Origin: Ascidiella aspersa
Lineage: Eukaryota
DNA length: 64,000 nt
Direction: 5' to 3'
Assembly: GCA_963924565.1 (NCBI GenBank)
Contig: OZ004614.1
Coordinates: forward strand, 10,788,001-10,852,000
Shown: positions 21,401 through 37,500 of the stretch, one piece after another
How positions within the stretch are numbered: the stretch's first letter is position 1
Layout of the letters: every line of letters starts with the position of its first letter
The notes under the pieces: generated by a model
The model's database searches: none
The model's input: only the letters and a program-made list of their open reading frames with translations
What the model was told of the DNA's origin: nothing
Program-made: the position numbers and the translations under genes

Positions 21401-24400
21401 TGTTAATCCAATGTAATCCGCTTCGACGTCTAAAGCGCCAAGGCCATGTTCTCATGTCGCACATCAAAGTACAAAGTCCAGGATGGTTGGACCACACCAC
21501 ACTTGAGGCCGCAAATGCGCAGCGGGCACGCACCTGTCACGTTGCTCCAGCTACTTTACTGACTCAAAGGCGATGTCGTGAAATCATTCGTGTTCGACTT
21601 TGTCGTTCGGCCACTTTCGTGTCGTTTAATCCAGTGATTCCCAAACTGTGTGTCGCAAAAACTCTTAAACTGTGCAATAGATTGTCAAGTGTGAAACTTT
21701 TTGTAAGGTCAGAAAAAAAAAATTTCTATTACCAATAGGCACGCAAGCATTTTAAACCTAAATACGCACTATTCATTACGAATTAATAATTTTGACACAT
21801 TAACATTTAGTTTGTCGTGTGTAAAGGGCGCTTGTAAAATAACTCCATTGTTGTTCTGTTAAAAGTGTGCCGCGAAATAGTCAAGATATTTTTAGTGTCC
21901 GTACAACAACGTCCGTCTGTAAACTGGAATCATTTTTATCCGGTAGTGCGTTTCGCCCTCATAATCCAACTGTTCTTTTCTAGTAGCTGTACATTGAACC
22001 AACACTAAACAGCTAGGGGCTGTAGATGACTATTTAAAGCTTAAAAATTGTTGAAAAAAAAGTGCTACAATTTCATCAATCTGTACCAGAGTTTAAAATA
22101 AACGACAATGGACTTAATCAGCGTTAAAATTCGATAGGTCAGCAAACAAATAATTGGGAAGAGGCTATAGGAGTATAGGGCTTATAAAATGCACATTTCT
22201 TGTCAAAACTTGGACGTGTGTGACAGAATCATGGATGCAATATACCCTTTTAACCCTAGATTAATTAAATTCATAAAAGCCTCGATCAAATCTAAGACGT
22301 GGCTGCATGCGTCGTTTCAACATGTTTTTGTATTTGACAACCACCCTCTTCAGACTAAAACGCTGACTGAGTAATGGGTCAGGTCAGAATTGACTCACAA
22401 GTTTTACCTTATTGCCAATATGCGCGTTGTATCGAGCGCAAAGCAGACGTACCGAGTAGTGGTTACAGAGTGTGTTGTTGCACACGGGGAATTCGCCGCG
22501 GAAAAAAACAATCGCTGGAATCACTCGTAGTATAGTGCCTCGCGACGCAGCAACGAATCCATTTTGCGTTCACCGCCCGTCACGTAGTCTTTGTGACGTC
22601 ACACTTGCTTACGTGCCAAGCGCTGTGGCTGAAATGGTTTCTTCATGGACTTATTTTGCTCGCTCGTAGAGGGATACATGCTTCGGAGACTTTCGTGATA
22701 CAAGCGCCTTACTTTTATTGCGTTGCATTGAGTATCTGTGTGGTATTCTTCTGTCTGTGCCGCTATAGGCTTATAAACCAAACTCTCAGGAAACGTTTTC
22801 CTTAGCCGCTTTTTACGTAGTGATGTATCACTTAATGGTTTAAAACAATTTATTTTTCTATTTATATATTCATTTTAAACTAAAGTGTACCAGGGTTCCA
22901 ATCCTGTTTCCCTTAAACTCAAAAAGATTTTAATGACTATCCATATATTTCGCTACCATTTGATCGGATTTTCTTATCTCGTTTTTTATGAAAAAGAGAT
23001 TAAAAGAGAATTACAATTTCGCCAACTATAGTAGTTTACTGAAACCTGAAACGGGTGCCAATCACCGGTCGATACTAATTTGTATTTTCCTAGCGGTTAG
23101 CACTCAACTTTAGCGCAAACTGAGTTTTCCGGTTTGAGACAAAAGCAAACAACACCTTTTTTAGTTCTCAAGCTGATGTTTGCTTTTCAGTAATATTGTG
23201 CTGTTAAAATACTTTTGTGGGGTATTTTTACGATTGCAAATTTGTCCAGCTGCGCTGTGGTTGATATCGATAATGAAATGGATTTTCTAAAATTCTCAGC
23301 GAAGCTTGTTTCACTCTGGATTTCATTTCTAATCACTAAAGCTTCTAAAATTGCCTTTCGTCTGCTGACATTATAAGCAAAATTATACCATTCTCGTAGT
23401 TGAAATATTTAGTTTGGTTAGCTTTTTTCAATTGATATATTGTAGGGGTGCACAGTATAGTGCAAGGATAACGGTACACTACAAATATGAAACTATTACT
23501 CTGGTAAAAAGTGAAATTCAATTGCGGTTTGTATGTTTTTTTTTAGAATCCTGACAGATAAGCTGAAGTAAATAAATCAATAAAACTACGATCGATTCTG
23601 ATAATGTTGTTTTTCAGGTTTTCGCCAGCTATATAGATGTTAACGGTGGTGCGTTAATTTAAACTATCGAGAAACATTTGTTTTTAAGTCCTGGTGTTCC
23701 AAGCCGGTTTATAGATTGTGTTTTTTGCCCTCCGATGCCGCCATTTTGTTTTGAGGGATTACCTGCTCGTATTTTGGCATGGGCGAATTCGGCGCGCCGA
23801 GATTTTTTATATCCGGACTATATAAACACTCTTATTAGCGCCACAACTTTCGCATATATTGTCCTTTAAATAATCTCGCCGCGCCAAGTTCGCACATGTC
23901 GTATTTTGCTGGGTTGTGTTTTATTGCCTCTCGTCGACCAACTTAAGGCTAAGGTTTCGGCGTGATCTTTATACGTCGGCTTTCCGCTTCTTATCCCACA
24001 GATTCTCTTGTTACCTAGGGACGCTGAACGTGAGCATTTAACCCGTAGCGTATAAGTCAACGGCCAACGGTCGAAGTTCTCCAATGGGCCATTCACTGGT
24101 TTCTGGTTTCTGTAGTACACGGGCCGGCCACGCGTTCGCGAAAGAGACTTGCCTACGTGACTCACGGCCACTTGGTTCTTTGTTCACTTGCGGTGTCTGA
24201 ACGGAGCGTGTGTTTTCGTTTCGCGCTGTTGCAATATTTGCTGAATCTGCCGCATCCCCTGCGAGCCAATTAATCGTTGCTCGACTGATGCCAACAAATG
24301 ACCAAAAGTGCAGAAGTGCAGAAATTTATAATTGTTTTAATTTTATTCACTGGAATAGCTATATATAGAGAGTGGTCAAAAAGCAGCTTCAGAAGGGCAC

Positions 24401-34588: not shown

Positions 34589-37500
34589 TAATATAGTTCT
34601 TTGGTTTGGCTATTTAAGATAATATAAAACAGGATACTGTATAGGCCTGAGTTAAATAGTGATAGTTTGTAATCATAGTCTCAGTCTAAAAATCGCATGC
34701 TAAGTAAATTATAGTTGACTACCCTGTTAAGTTTCCATATGTGTGATAACTATGACGATTGTTTTTTGACTTGTCTAAATAATTTTGAATGACTTTCACT
34801 ATAAAATTTTTGAAACAAATATAAAACGTAGAAAGAATATCAAAGCTATACAGAAGTATAGATAGCATTTTAAACGTTTCGAATACCTTTATTCATTGCA
34901 GTATGTTAAACATACATATAGAGTTATTTGAAAATATTTCATTCAAAAGCCTACCTACTTCTGTATGGGCTTTGATATACTTATTATGTCTTACTACAAC
35001 CTCCAACCATTATAATTCTCCAAAATGTAAAACGCATTTCCTAACTGAGTTGTACATAACACAACACCAAAGCGCAAAGAATCAGACAAAGAAGAATATT
35101 TTGTTTATCATTTTAAAGAAGTGACATATTGTAAATTTGATTAATGTAGTAAACATAAACGTGTCATTGAGCAAGTGATGCCTAAATGCACACTATCCAT
35201 TAGTAAACTGATGATAATATCAAGATGTCTAGTTTCATTACGATAAATCCGGATGTCTATAACATCGTAAAGTGTAAGCAATAAAGCGGAAATTAAAGAA
35301 CTGTACAGCTCCATGCGAACGTGACGCCGATGCAGTAATAACGGTGTGTATACGTGACTTTTTGCTGCTGGAAAAGCGTGGCAGCATTGCTTGCACCGGA
35401 TTGGACGACGCTTAAATCTTTCTCAACCAATCGCGTGACGTTACTAGTCATATCTGACAAAGTCGACATTATAATGCGATCCGTGTCCTGTTTTACGGAT
35501 ATCGCGGTTTTATCTAAAAGTTGGTTGTTCTCAGTACTATACAATGAACTGAGTTTTGGGGCTTTAATGCAAACTTGCAAGGTCGTCAAAAAGCGTAAAA
35601 AAATTTAAAATTGCACTCAGCGACAGCAGGGGTGTTTGTTTGCATTCGAACAATTATTTGGGTTTATAGACAAAATATCATGTTTTTTTAGCGTTTTTAG
35701 ATAAAGATGACATCACACTTTTTAAAATGTAAACCGGTTATTCAAAACGCTGTTTTTCGCAATTCTCTGTGTTATTATTGACAAGTGTATAAAGTCGCAA
35801 CATTGAACCTATTGCCCTTTAATTAATAAAATCGTTTGATGGTTGCTGTTGTGTTTGTCAGAAATGTTTTTTGCCCTAATTTTAGTGCTTGAAAAAAGGT
35901 GTTTCGACAAAACAAAAACCGCAAAAAGGTTTAGTGTTTCCCATGTAGTTGTTCAACTAGTTTGTTTCAGTAAAAGAGACTACCCTATTTTAAAACAAAT
36001 AGCAAGTAAACCACGTACTTCTTATTGATTTTTTATATTTAAAGATAAACGAAATTTTCCTTTCATAGAATTTGTCAAGGCAATATCTAGAATTGGAATG
36101 CAAGCCACCACAGACGTCTTACTATAATTATTTTTTTGCTTCGCTGTGACACTTTAGGTTTGGACTCATTTTGAGTTAGAGTATGTATTTCCAAACCACA
36201 ATTTTGCAAAAATTATTGTAACAGATTTTGAAAAATATAAAGTTAAAATATGGGAGAAAGTTTTGATTTTAAAGTTTCCAGGGGGATATTGATTAATATA
36301 TGATGGAAACTCTTTTATCATATCTAATAATAGAATGTGGGGTAGGGATTTATGTTCAACAAGGCAAAGTCGCCTGATTCTAATCTACAGACTGACTCGA
36401 CGACCTTTTGACTAGACGAAGATAGTTTCACGGTCCATGTTCTATGTTCTGTTCTCTTTTTGTTCCTAATCATCTCAAGTTGCACAAAAAAAATTGAATG
36501 TTTAAATTAACAATAGAAAAACTGACACTCATTTTACATGTCGCCAGTTAGGCATGGTAAACAAAACTTTAGCGATGTAACTTCGAAATGAACATTAGGA
36601 AACACACCGTTTCGTCTGGAATAAGCTGAATAAGTACATATCAGCTTGTAAGCGCCATCGTCCGGTTGAACCCGTTGTGGGAAAACTGTAGCCCACTAAG
36701 CAATTCAACCCGACCCACGGCTAGTTTATAAAACTTTTTATAGCAAAATGTAGCTTTTACTTTTTAAATCACACTTGTAAGGAAATTTAGTAAGTAGGGA
36801 TGTCCGATAATGTTAGATCGGAACCGACACCCAATGCCAAGTGATAATATCGGTACTTACTATGGTTGTATCGCTACCAATCCGATACCAAATAACTTGT
36901 GAATAACAACGATGCTTTGCCATCCAACCTTAGTTGTTCTACCTTTAAGGACAAATAAAAATTATACGCTTAAAAAGATAAATAGGCTTACTAGCATAAA
37001 AATAAATTTCAGCATAACAACTTGAAAATCATTTACATTGCTTTTTTTAATTTTTGTTTTTTTTAATTTCGACAATTTTATCAATTTTTTTTTGTGTGAT
37101 GAGGTGCTGTTGAGAGATGTATTGTTATTTGAAAGCATTGATCGGTGATTTTATCTCCTGTTTTGTCAGTCGCAACAATATAACTAAACAGGTTTGCACC
37201 TGTGGTCGTAACAGATCACATTAAACAAAATTAAATCATGGTTTCCTACCTTAATATTCGTTCGGCATAATTTACGTCATTTCATTTTATAAACATAAAA
37301 ATAATAAAAATACCGGTTTGTGTTCTTGATGTGTCCTTAAACACAAAAATTGATTTTACAATGCGAATAACTTTAACTGTATTATTGCTTTGCGTTGCCA
37401 TTGCACCTAATGGCGTTGCGGGCACGGACACGTAATTTTTCTAGGGAAAAGCTATATCGAGGTGAAGAATTATATATTCTTCAAGATTAAATTGTTTGAT

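Follow-up and report, generated by a model that had tools for sequence, protein, structure and literature searches.

A dense array of candidate HIF/ARNT elements in and behind the FIH gene, and a smaller cluster upstream of PHD/EGLN

One question raised by the FIH (HIF1AN) gene described here is why copies of a single octamer, TACGTGAC, should be gathered in its last intron and beyond its 3' end, and, if they are functional, which factor they bind and which gene they serve. The window, the 64-kb stretch of DNA that was analysed, holds ten TACGTGAC sites, at 22579 (-), 24154 (+), 25247 (-), 26119 (+), 26498 (+), 30581 (+), 32110 (+), 33204 (+), 34357 (+) and 35351 (+), all of them within 12.8 kb in and behind FIH and none elsewhere. 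Every coordinate given in a preliminary description of this DNA, which had reported the same ten sites and no others in the window, checked out, as did the four identical 12-mers TGCCTACGTGAC that it placed at 24150, 26115, 26494 and 34353. Its identification of the gene as FIH is borne out by exon matches to the human protein (E = 8e-26 and 4e-12) and by the translation of the terminal exon, which matches the human FIH C-terminus VGPLLNTMIKGRYN. Transcription evidence came from a single RNA-seq run, sampled at about 6%, with reads examined over 22-28 kb; seven of these reads join the exon ending at 20131 to position 26897, defining a last intron of 20132-26896 and upholding the earlier division of the array into five intronic and five flanking sites. 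The latter sit 2.6-7.4 kb past the traced limit of the 3'UTR (Table 1).

Table 1. Candidate elements and FIH gene features, in positions of the window
Feature	Position	Strand	Remark
GC-rich block ending in a GTAAG donor	about 13680-13918		
Near-consensus TGTGTACGTGAG in GC-rich block	13763..13774	+	
Second TACGTG in same GC-rich block as 13763 element	13799		
FIH first coding exon	15478..15657	+	ATG at 15478, GT donor after 15657
FIH catalytic-core exon segment	17638..17793	+	human FIH residues 191-242, E = 8e-26
FIH penultimate coding exon	19877..20131	+	donor CAAGAG/GTGAGA; human FIH residues 289-335
FIH last intron, 6.76 kb	20132..26896	+	five perfect sites; RNA-seq junction reads
Site 1, TACGTGAC, FIH last intron	22579..22586	-	inverted HRE-CRE-HRE block with 22594-22601 and 22606-22617
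Perfect palindromic CRE TGACGTCA	22594..22601	.	between two inverted ACGTG-core sites
Near-consensus TGCTTACGTGCC	22606..22617	+	one mismatch
Full 12-bp TGCCTACGTGAC, FIH last intron	24150..24161	+	
Full 12-bp TGCGTACGTGAC, FIH last intron	25247..25258	-	
Variant TGCGAACGTG	core at 25270	-	~20 bp from 25247 element
Full 12-bp TGCCTACGTGAC, FIH last intron	26115..26126	+	
Full 12-bp TGCCTACGTGAC	26494..26505	+	~390 bp upstream of last-exon acceptor
FIH terminal exon	26897..28000	+	36 codons, stop 27005-27007, 3'UTR; reads to at least 28000
AATAAA signal past traced FIH 3'UTR	28004-28009		
Full 12-bp TGTGTACGTGAC, 3' flank	30577..30588	+	
Near-consensus TGCGAACGTGAC, 3' flank	31566..31577	+	
Full 12-bp TGCATACGTGAC, 3' flank	32106..32117	+	
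TACGTGAC with 5' extension GTGC, 3' flank	33204..33211	+	paralogue of 34353 unit
Full 12-bp TGCCTACGTGAC, 3' flank	34353..34364	+	
Near-consensus TGCGAACGTGAC	35314..35325	+	33 bp upstream of 35347 element
Full 12-bp TGTATACGTGAC, 3' flank	35347..35358	+	

The simplest account of such an array is that it has no function and is a relic of old local duplications, a product of chance or a mutational hotspot, an account that we regard as very improbable. With respect to chance, dinucleotide shuffles of the whole window give an expectation of 1.17 TACGTGAC sites and a maximum of 4, shuffles of 22-36 kb in local blocks of 200-1000 bp give 0.28-0.36 and a maximum of 3, and the genome-wide rate (5578 sites across 308.6 Mb, one every 55 kb) gives 0.23 per 12.8 kb, for which the Poisson probability of at least ten sites is ~1e-13. 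Ten observed sites are to be set against 0.2-1.2 expected across the three null models, and the earlier estimate of fewer than one chance octamer per 13 kb agrees with both the local and the genome-wide figures. Because the local block shuffles, which control for local composition, leave so few sites to be expected, CpG-rich patches fail to account for the array. The hexamer TACGTG, which had been described as unenriched, indeed numbers 16 in the ~50 kb outside the locus, near the expectation from composition.

Duplication accounts for little more of the array. The preliminary description had proposed comparing the density of both words genome-wide, and had recognised that TGCCTACGTGAC might prove to be part of a dispersed repeat; the 308-Mb genome holds 34 copies of this 12-mer only, four of them at the FIH locus, in unrelated contexts and with unrelated flanks except for two recent duplicate pairs elsewhere. 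An origin from dispersed repeats or transposable-element copies was rejected on these grounds and because no more than one pair in the locus is homologous. Self-BLAST and motif-masked pairwise alignment found homologous flanks for the 33204/34357 pair only, with ~75% identity over 300 bp, and of the two duplicated pairs of sites suggested earlier this one stands; the other duplicated block (23193-23380 and 25313-25503) adjoins sites but contains none. At least nine of the sites appear to have arisen independently. An array without function draws some support from the 33204/34357 paralogues, whose motif shows no more conservation than the blocks beside it, from the presence of the word in tandem repeats elsewhere in the genome, and from the flank spacing of ~1.1 kb (intervals of 1529, 1094, 1153 and 994 bp, matching the 1.0-1.5 kb reported before), which hints at an old tandem array. 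The flanks of nine of the ten sites are nevertheless mutually unalignable, scoring at background level, an additional TG is retained at positions -4/-3, and the PHD locus independently bears the same cluster. If the sites did share an origin, the motif has outlived all of its surroundings, which itself implies selection.

The element exceeds the octamer by which it was found. It spans about 12 bp, TG-Y-N-TACGTGAC, that is, T-G-(C/T)-N-T-A-C-G-T-G-A-C, with G at -3 in nine of ten sites (background 0.18, binomial ~2e-6) and T at -4 in eight. Eight of the ten perfect cores fit the full pattern. The ten cores and five near-consensus copies are distributed among the putative FIH promoter, the last intron (6.8 kb) and the 3' flank (7 kb). 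When one mismatch is allowed the window contains 13 matches versus 1.42 expected, 12 of them in or around FIH, and T precedes 10 of the 13 occurrences of ACGTGAC in the locus. All ten cores read TACGTG, the preferred form of the HRE core, which is defined as RCGTG (PMC3686674). The information content is asymmetric (5' TG-Y, 3' AC), and CACGTG, with only two occurrences in 22-36 kb, shows no enrichment there; for these two reasons the element is better read as a bHLH-PAS/ARNT site than as an E-box, in line with the HIF/ARNT-type assignment first made for it. The bHLH-Zip E-box of USF, MYC and TFE factors ('CLEAR' GTCACGTGAC) was rejected, since the first core position is T, not C, at every site, and CACGTGAC was not found within the array. 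To judge from its letters, the element is built like a class I bHLH-PAS/ARNT site, in which a 5'-extended TAC half-site is joined to a GTGAC (ARNT-side) half-site.

The partner of ARNT is a separate matter. TACGTG is common to several class I bHLH-PAS/ARNT dimers, those with Sim-, Trh- and NPAS-type partners among them, and it is conceivable, if on balance unlikely, that the array consists of real sites for one of these or for a lineage-specific protein, with FIH and PHD sharing a tissue-specific or developmental expression unrelated to oxygen. The distribution of the element across the genome bears directly on this alternative. Complete lists of TGYNTACGTGAY contain 333 sites genome-wide, one per 927 kb, and only three 5-kb windows hold at least four of them, two at FIH and one upstream of a PHD/EGLN gene in which the MYND finger and the catalytic exon were identified. 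FIH holds eight TGYNTACGTGAY sites in 11.2 kb; PHD/EGLN has four in a 1.65-kb stretch that lies 1-2.6 kb upstream of the ATG of the MYND exon, as counted with a pattern whose degenerate final position (Y) was introduced after the PHD sites had been seen. When the strict pattern derived from FIH, TGYNTACGTGAC, is applied, two sites remain at PHD, 543 bp apart; for a 25-kb region chosen in advance, the empirical probability of containing one of the other nine TGYNTACGTGAC clusters is ~9e-4. The PHD/EGLN sites, examined as possible repeat copies, are not such, and non-repeat loci other than these two have at most three TGYNTACGTGAY sites. Certain other 8-mer clusters either are tandem repeats or lie beside genes without an evident connection to hypoxia.

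That the densest cluster of a rare 12-mer lies at FIH and the next upstream of PHD suggests that low oxygen may induce both brakes on HIF. The HIF-alpha C-terminal transactivation domain is encoded in this genome with the asparagine targeted by FIH intact (DCEVNAP), and thus the FIH-HIF axis exists. A partner other than HIF would fit the strong 5' TG-Y extension, which is not recognised in mammalian HIF sites, and the results at other classical targets, as no cluster of the extended element was found at REDD1/DDIT4, BNIP3, three LDH/MDH loci or the region upstream of HIF-alpha. The latter weakens the assignment to HIF, yet single core sites can suffice for HRE function. It is hard, moreover, to explain without the hypoxia pathway why the two densest loci of the genome should both be HIF hydroxylase genes. 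PHD is a conserved feedback target of HIF, established in those animal models in which the loop has been studied. In mammals, HIF binds RCGTG elements in PHD2 and PHD3, creating a negative feedback loop (PMC3686674).

Even if HIF is the binder, the regulated gene need not be FIH. Some or all of the sites, the five of the 3' flank above all, could regulate another unit (an unannotated non-coding RNA, a set of alternative first exons or the gene that follows downstream) with FIH as a bystander, which we consider decidedly unlikely. The five flank sites all lie on the + strand, each inside a short CpG-containing patch and at intervals of about 1-1.5 kb, and a possible GT donor lies downstream of some. 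Within the last intron, however, RNA is patchy and from the sense strand only, and the reads over 22-28 kb include no antisense RNA, no pile-ups of read starts and no splice junctions from the sites, a pattern that fits enhancers over promoters. Searches of 20-38 kb gave no Rfam family, no tRNA and no ORF with Pfam support, and an Atlas search with the ORF at 35293-35589 gave no match. Promoters of small-RNA genes and alternative first exons were rejected on the Rfam and tRNA searches and on the reads over 22-28 kb. Furthermore, near-consensus sites also occur at the GC-rich block 5' of the first coding exon, which we infer to be the putative FIH promoter or a non-coding first exon.

We therefore lean, with somewhat better than even confidence, towards a real homotypic regulatory array whose members are most probably HIF response elements by which FIH is driven in concert with PHD; HIF as the binder, enhancers as the role of the sites and FIH as the regulated gene are each inferred. 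According to this model, HIF-alpha would escape hydroxylation as oxygen falls, pair with ARNT and occupy the elements of the FIH locus, whose intronic and downstream clusters would act as hypoxia-responsive enhancers and raise FIH transcription. The cluster upstream of PHD/EGLN would likewise raise the prolyl hydroxylase, and because both hydroxylase brakes would rise together the result would be a two-armed negative feedback. A broader proposition, held tentatively and at a little under even chances, is that the hypoxia response of this invertebrate lineage is damped by such feedback. PHD and FIH would carry more copies of an extended, lineage-specific 12-bp HIF/ARNT element than any other target in the genome, FIH the most, and FIH, strongly induced by hypoxia, would act as a brake on the C-terminal activation domain of HIF.

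It is textbook knowledge that HIF induces prolyl hydroxylases which then feed back on it, as seen also with egl-9 in C. elegans and fatiga in Drosophila, but FIH is taken to be a constitutive sensor. Mammalian FIH is generally regarded as not inducible by hypoxia, and its gene is not known to carry an HRE array. The closest parallel is with mammalian PHD2/EGLN1 and PHD3/EGLN3, where a HIF hydroxylase gene carries RCGTG elements and hypoxia raises the off-switch of HIF (PMC3686674), and the PHD orthologue described here resembles them in its four extended elements upstream of the ATG. Unlike those cases, which involve one or a few HREs at prolyl hydroxylase genes and not at FIH, the larger array here is on the asparaginyl hydroxylase, with ten perfect and five near-perfect sites; on the proposed reading, the known hydroxylase feedback would here take a new form. 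The enzyme itself is orthologous to mammalian HIF1AN, with a conserved C-terminus and a conserved substrate motif in HIF-alpha, but differs from it in an insertion of ~30 residues and a C-terminal tail of 22 residues. If the model is correct, the asparaginyl arm of the pathway can also be wired as inducible feedback, a control logic unlike that of feedback through PHD alone. The array also supplies a candidate extended HRE consensus for this lineage and, in a non-model animal, easily mutated elements of defined sequence with which reporter, deletion and binding tests could be made.

A second parallel is found in the CNS-midline enhancers of Drosophila, in which asymmetric TACGTG copies bound by Sim:Tango or Trh:Tango are clustered in the introns and flanks of target genes, much as multiple copies of a bHLH-PAS/ARNT-type site are distributed here. 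Those enhancers are developmental, whereas the present clusters mark two oxygen-sensor genes and carry the 5' TG-Y-N and 3' AC extension. Finally, composite enhancers of the LDH-A type combine an HRE with a CRE bound by CREB/ATF factors. The block at 22579-22617, where a perfect TGACGTCA is enclosed by inverted ACGTG-core sites on both sides, resembles such composites and may act as one, but the arrangement is seen at only one of the ten sites.

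An array of ten TACGTGAC sites, eight on the plus and two on the minus strand, was recovered in and behind the FIH (HIF1AN) gene at the positions reported in the preliminary description, which was also correct in assigning the identical 12-mer TGCCTACGTGAC to four of them and in finding the 8-mer nowhere else in the 64-kb window. Dinucleotide shuffles of the whole window gave an expectation of 1.17 copies. Because the sites are located in CpG-containing patches, local composition was controlled for by shuffling the 22-36 kb region in 200-, 500-, and 1000-bp blocks, which gave an expectation of 0.28-0.36 copies and a maximum of 3, so that the sites cannot be attributed to local CpG or GC content. 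The CpG observed/expected ratio of the window is ~1.1, and the array stretch is therefore not CpG-depleted. The 8-mer is found 5578 times in the 308.6-Mb A. aspersa genome, or one per 55 kb, with no excess over its reversed control. At this density, 0.23 sites would be expected in 12.8 kb versus the ten observed, a Poisson tail of ~1e-13 that is still ~1e-9 when allowing for ~24,000 windows.

The conserved sequence extends 5' of the core. G is found at -3 in nine of the ten sites (background 0.18, binomial ~2e-6), T at -4 in eight, and C or T at -2, with positions -4 to -2 having had no role in selecting the sites. The element is ~12 bp and asymmetric, with the consensus TG-Y-N-TACGTGAC; allowing one mismatch, the consensus matches 13 times in the window versus 1.42 expected, and 12 of these matches are in or around FIH. 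T precedes ACGTGAC in 10 of its 13 occurrences in the locus. The first core base is T at every site and CACGTG is not enriched in the locus, ruling out a palindromic E-box. TAC is the class I bHLH-PAS half-site and GTGAC the ARNT-type half-site, and as judged from its sequence the element fits the former, with a 5' extension, joined to the latter. A perfect palindromic CRE, TGACGTCA, is positioned between two inverted sites. A second CRE palindrome lies over the last FIH codons, just before the TAG stop, and the window holds eight in total.

The sites are rare and largely independent of one another. The 12-mer TGCCTACGTGAC occurs 34 times in the genome, versus 6 for its reversed control, with four of the 34 at the FIH locus. 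Of the other 30 copies, compared over 612 bp each, two pairs elsewhere in the genome are recent duplicates; the flanks otherwise show no relationship, either among themselves or with the copies in the window. The preliminary description had named a dispersed repeat of comparable genome-wide density as fatal to its proposal, and such a repeat is thus ruled out as the source. Within the locus, a word-7 self-BLAST identified two paralogous blocks only, and in motif-masked Smith-Waterman comparisons of the +/-250-bp flanks of all 45 site pairs, only 33204/34357 exceeded the real-sequence null, with ~75% identity over ~300 bp and the motif conserved no better than neighbouring blocks. Of the two site pairs suspected of deriving from local duplication, only 33204/34357 has homologous flanks; the second block lies beside sites. 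With a single homologous pair among 45, at least nine of the ten sites are therefore independent occurrences, and recent tandem or segmental duplication is ruled out as the source of all sites save this pair. The pair itself speaks for a view of the array as non-functional duplication relics or chance; set against the remaining sites and the block shuffles, we regard that view as very improbable.

HIF binds RCGTG in PHD2 and PHD3, establishing a negative feedback loop (PMC3686674). The premise of our examination of PHD/EGLN was that, if the element is the HRE of this animal, this conserved HIF feedback target should bear it. Searching the genome with Pfam PF13640 identified three loci, one of which reads EPKFNRVMMFFSDKRNPHEVLP, which we take to match the catalytic core of human PHD2, and is preceded by a MYND-finger first coding exon ~6.5 kb upstream. 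The sites upstream of this exon are not repeat copies, and the clustering seen at FIH is common to PHD. The extended pattern TGYNTACGTGAY, split four ways to obtain a complete list that was merged by contig, is found 333 times in the genome (one per 927 kb), and the cluster ranking covers these sites rather than all 5578 TACGTGAC sites. FIH has eight in 11.2 kb and PHD four in 1.65 kb, and only three 5-kb windows in the genome hold at least four, two at FIH and one at PHD, with the qualification that T at the last position of the pattern was permitted only after the PHD sites had been seen. The strict pattern derived from FIH occurs 192 times in the genome; two of these sites, 543 bp apart, are at PHD, making it one of ~10 loci with at least two within 5 kb; the chance of a pre-chosen 25-kb region holding one of the other nine strict clusters is ~9e-4, or ~4e-3 when corrected for five target sets. 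The in-silico link between FIH and PHD is striking.

We lean, with moderate confidence, towards an array of homotypic HIF-alpha/ARNT response elements that would act as enhancers of FIH from promoter-proximal, intronic, and downstream positions, paralleled by the cluster upstream of PHD, such that both hydroxylases would be raised in hypoxia. Feedback through PHD2 and PHD3 is already known, and what is new is the FIH arm, an apparent extension of hydroxylase-mediated HIF feedback in which the array is unusually dense and the consensus extended to 12 bp. An HRE array at FIH was not described in any of the literature searched. FIH mRNA under hypoxia has reportedly been studied in a prawn and a catfish.

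Genes of the pathway are present in the genome. The terminal HIF-alpha exon encodes the C-terminal transactivation domain (...LQDCEVNAPLL..., Pfam HIF-1a_CTAD 35 bits), and from the DCEVNAP motif the FIH-target asparagine is therefore kept. Among classical HIF targets, extended-element clusters were absent from REDD1/DDIT4 (C3:7.061 Mb), BNIP3 (C5:20.28 Mb), three LDH/MDH loci, and a 20-kb stretch preceding the HIF-alpha C-terminal exon, all of which have scattered TACGTG only, at roughly background density. Either dense arrays are specific to hydroxylase genes, with weaker or solitary cores sufficing at ordinary targets, or a factor other than HIF is involved. In the latter case another TACGTG-binding factor would co-regulate FIH and PHD, which would suit the absence of clusters from the classical targets; with the two densest loci falling on the HIF hydroxylase genes, we consider this unlikely.

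The placement of the sites relative to FIH exons was established from homology and RNA-seq. Exons searched singly, rather than as a joined spliced protein, matched human FIH at residues 191-242 (E = 8e-26) and 289-335 (E = 4e-12). Reads from one run of the same organism were placed over 22001-28000, sampling ~6% of the run, and seven of them join ...TTCACAAG, the exon end at 20131, to 26897. The last intron is therefore 20132-26896, and five sites lie within it, as originally proposed. The 3'UTR is covered at a depth of 8-28 to at least 28000, and the other five sites are therefore 2.6-7.4 kb past the last covered base. The library is stranded, and all reads in 22001-28000 are on the FIH sense strand. 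Depth in the last intron is patchy (0 to 5), and no antisense RNA, read-start pile-ups, or splice junctions from the sites were seen in the sampled reads over 22001-28000. RNA-seq thus lends no support to promoters or antisense transcripts at the intronic sites and, light as the sampling is, favours enhancer-type elements over intronic promoters.

The flank sites in particular might regulate a different and unannotated transcription unit. In the 20-40 kb region, ten ORFs gave no significant Pfam matches and a protein-like minus-strand ORF gave no usable Atlas match, leaving hidden protein-coding genes unsupported there, and 20-38 kb has no matches to Rfam families or tRNAs, leaving small-RNA gene promoters likewise unsupported. 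We judge such a unit to be quite unlikely as the target. For FIH as the regulated gene, a candidate promoter-proximal region is a GC-rich block, 1.7 kb ahead of the start codon (ATG, 15478), that ends in a GTAAG donor, contains TGTGTACGTGAG and a second TACGTG, and could represent the promoter or the first exon of FIH.

Features of the FIH locus, the PHD locus, and other clusters (bare positions are window coordinates, the window being C8:10788001-10852000; C, contigs; L, genome stretches with their own coordinates)
Feature	Position	Remarks
Ten-site array	22579-35358	
Additional one-mismatch elements	22606, 31566, 35314, 13763	Consensus scan of window
CRE between inverted sites	22579-22617	
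Second CRE	26997-27004	
FIH stop codon	27005-27007	TAG
Paralogous block	33152-33300 / 34313-34454	One site in each copy
Paralogous block	23193-23380 / 25313-25503	Adjoins sites
GC-rich block	~13680-13918	
FIH insertion	19898-19990	
FIH C-terminal tail	26939-27004	
AATAAA	28004-28009	
Minus-strand ORF	35293-35589	
ATGACTTGACTTGACTTAAGTC repeats	28546-28998, 30048-30112, L032:100-560	
PHD catalytic core	C5:3396237-3396398	
PHD upstream sites	1-2.6 kb upstream of MYND-exon ATG	TGCTTACGTGAT(-), TGTGTACGTGAC(-), TGTGTACGTGAC(+), TGCGTACGTGAT(+)
HIF-alpha terminal exon	L052:1501-1599 (C1:8715460-8715558)	
Cluster	C1:26.843-26.861 Mb; L037-L039 (C1:26843090-26861180)	4 TGYNTACGTGAY sites in 18 kb; partly duplicated segments
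ASMase_C match	L039:6099-6521	Minus strand
Cluster	C3:36.09 Mb	3 TGYNTACGTGAY sites; 2-kb tandem repeat
Cluster	C9:22.076 Mb; L040:3695-7175 (C9:22075693-22079171)	Three perfect TGC(C/A)TACGTGAC in 3.5 kb; non-repeat sequence
Element pair	L044:5040-5476 (C6:4296036-4296472)	425 bp apart
Tandem units	L042:4400-5600 (C1:35497400-35498600)	Five units, ~230-390 bp

Sense RNA is found in patches of the 6.8-kb last intron (for instance 23801-24000, 24401-24600, and 26001-26400), its depth at most a fifth to a third of that in exons; no splice junctions were seen in 22001-26800, and pre-mRNA, intron retention, and enhancer-associated transcription are possible sources. The RNA-seq individual has many fixed differences from the reference in 22001-28000, such as seven in the 3'UTR (27537-27919) and four in 23312-23362, and would thus belong to a divergent haplotype or strain; the 12-bp elements contain none of the differences listed, but coverage at most of them was too low to judge. 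Compared to human FIH, the A. aspersa protein has a ~30-residue acidic/Ser-rich insertion between WHQIESL and ITVSVNFWY, where the human protein has LNGG, and the terminal exon encodes the conserved C-terminus, matching human VGPLLNTMIKGRYN and ending in GRY, followed by a 22-residue Ser/Thr/Asn-rich tail.

After FIH and PHD, the C9 cluster ranks highest among those in non-repeat sequence. Genes beside other clusters (NXPE, acid sphingomyelinase-like, SLC26, and EF-hand) are not diagnostic and have no obvious hypoxia link. The duplicated segments on C1 carry seven TACGTGAC, all on the plus strand, 3' of the acid sphingomyelinase-like gene, and the C6 pair of extended elements directly precedes an exon for an NXPE-family C-terminal domain, another NXPE gene lying ~2 kb away on the opposite strand. 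Short tandem or inverted 'ATGACTTGACTTGACTTAAGTC' repeats, which look like a MITE family, lie between the two halves of the array at FIH and also precede the site cluster at PHD. At C1:35.4975 Mb, a cluster of four sites consists of a tandem repeat carrying the word, each unit reading ...ctttgtgagtctc...TTACGTGAC(C/A)..., with one unit mutated to TTACGCGAC; the end of each unit is near a possible AAAG|GTAA donor, and the units may together form a series of alternative first exons.
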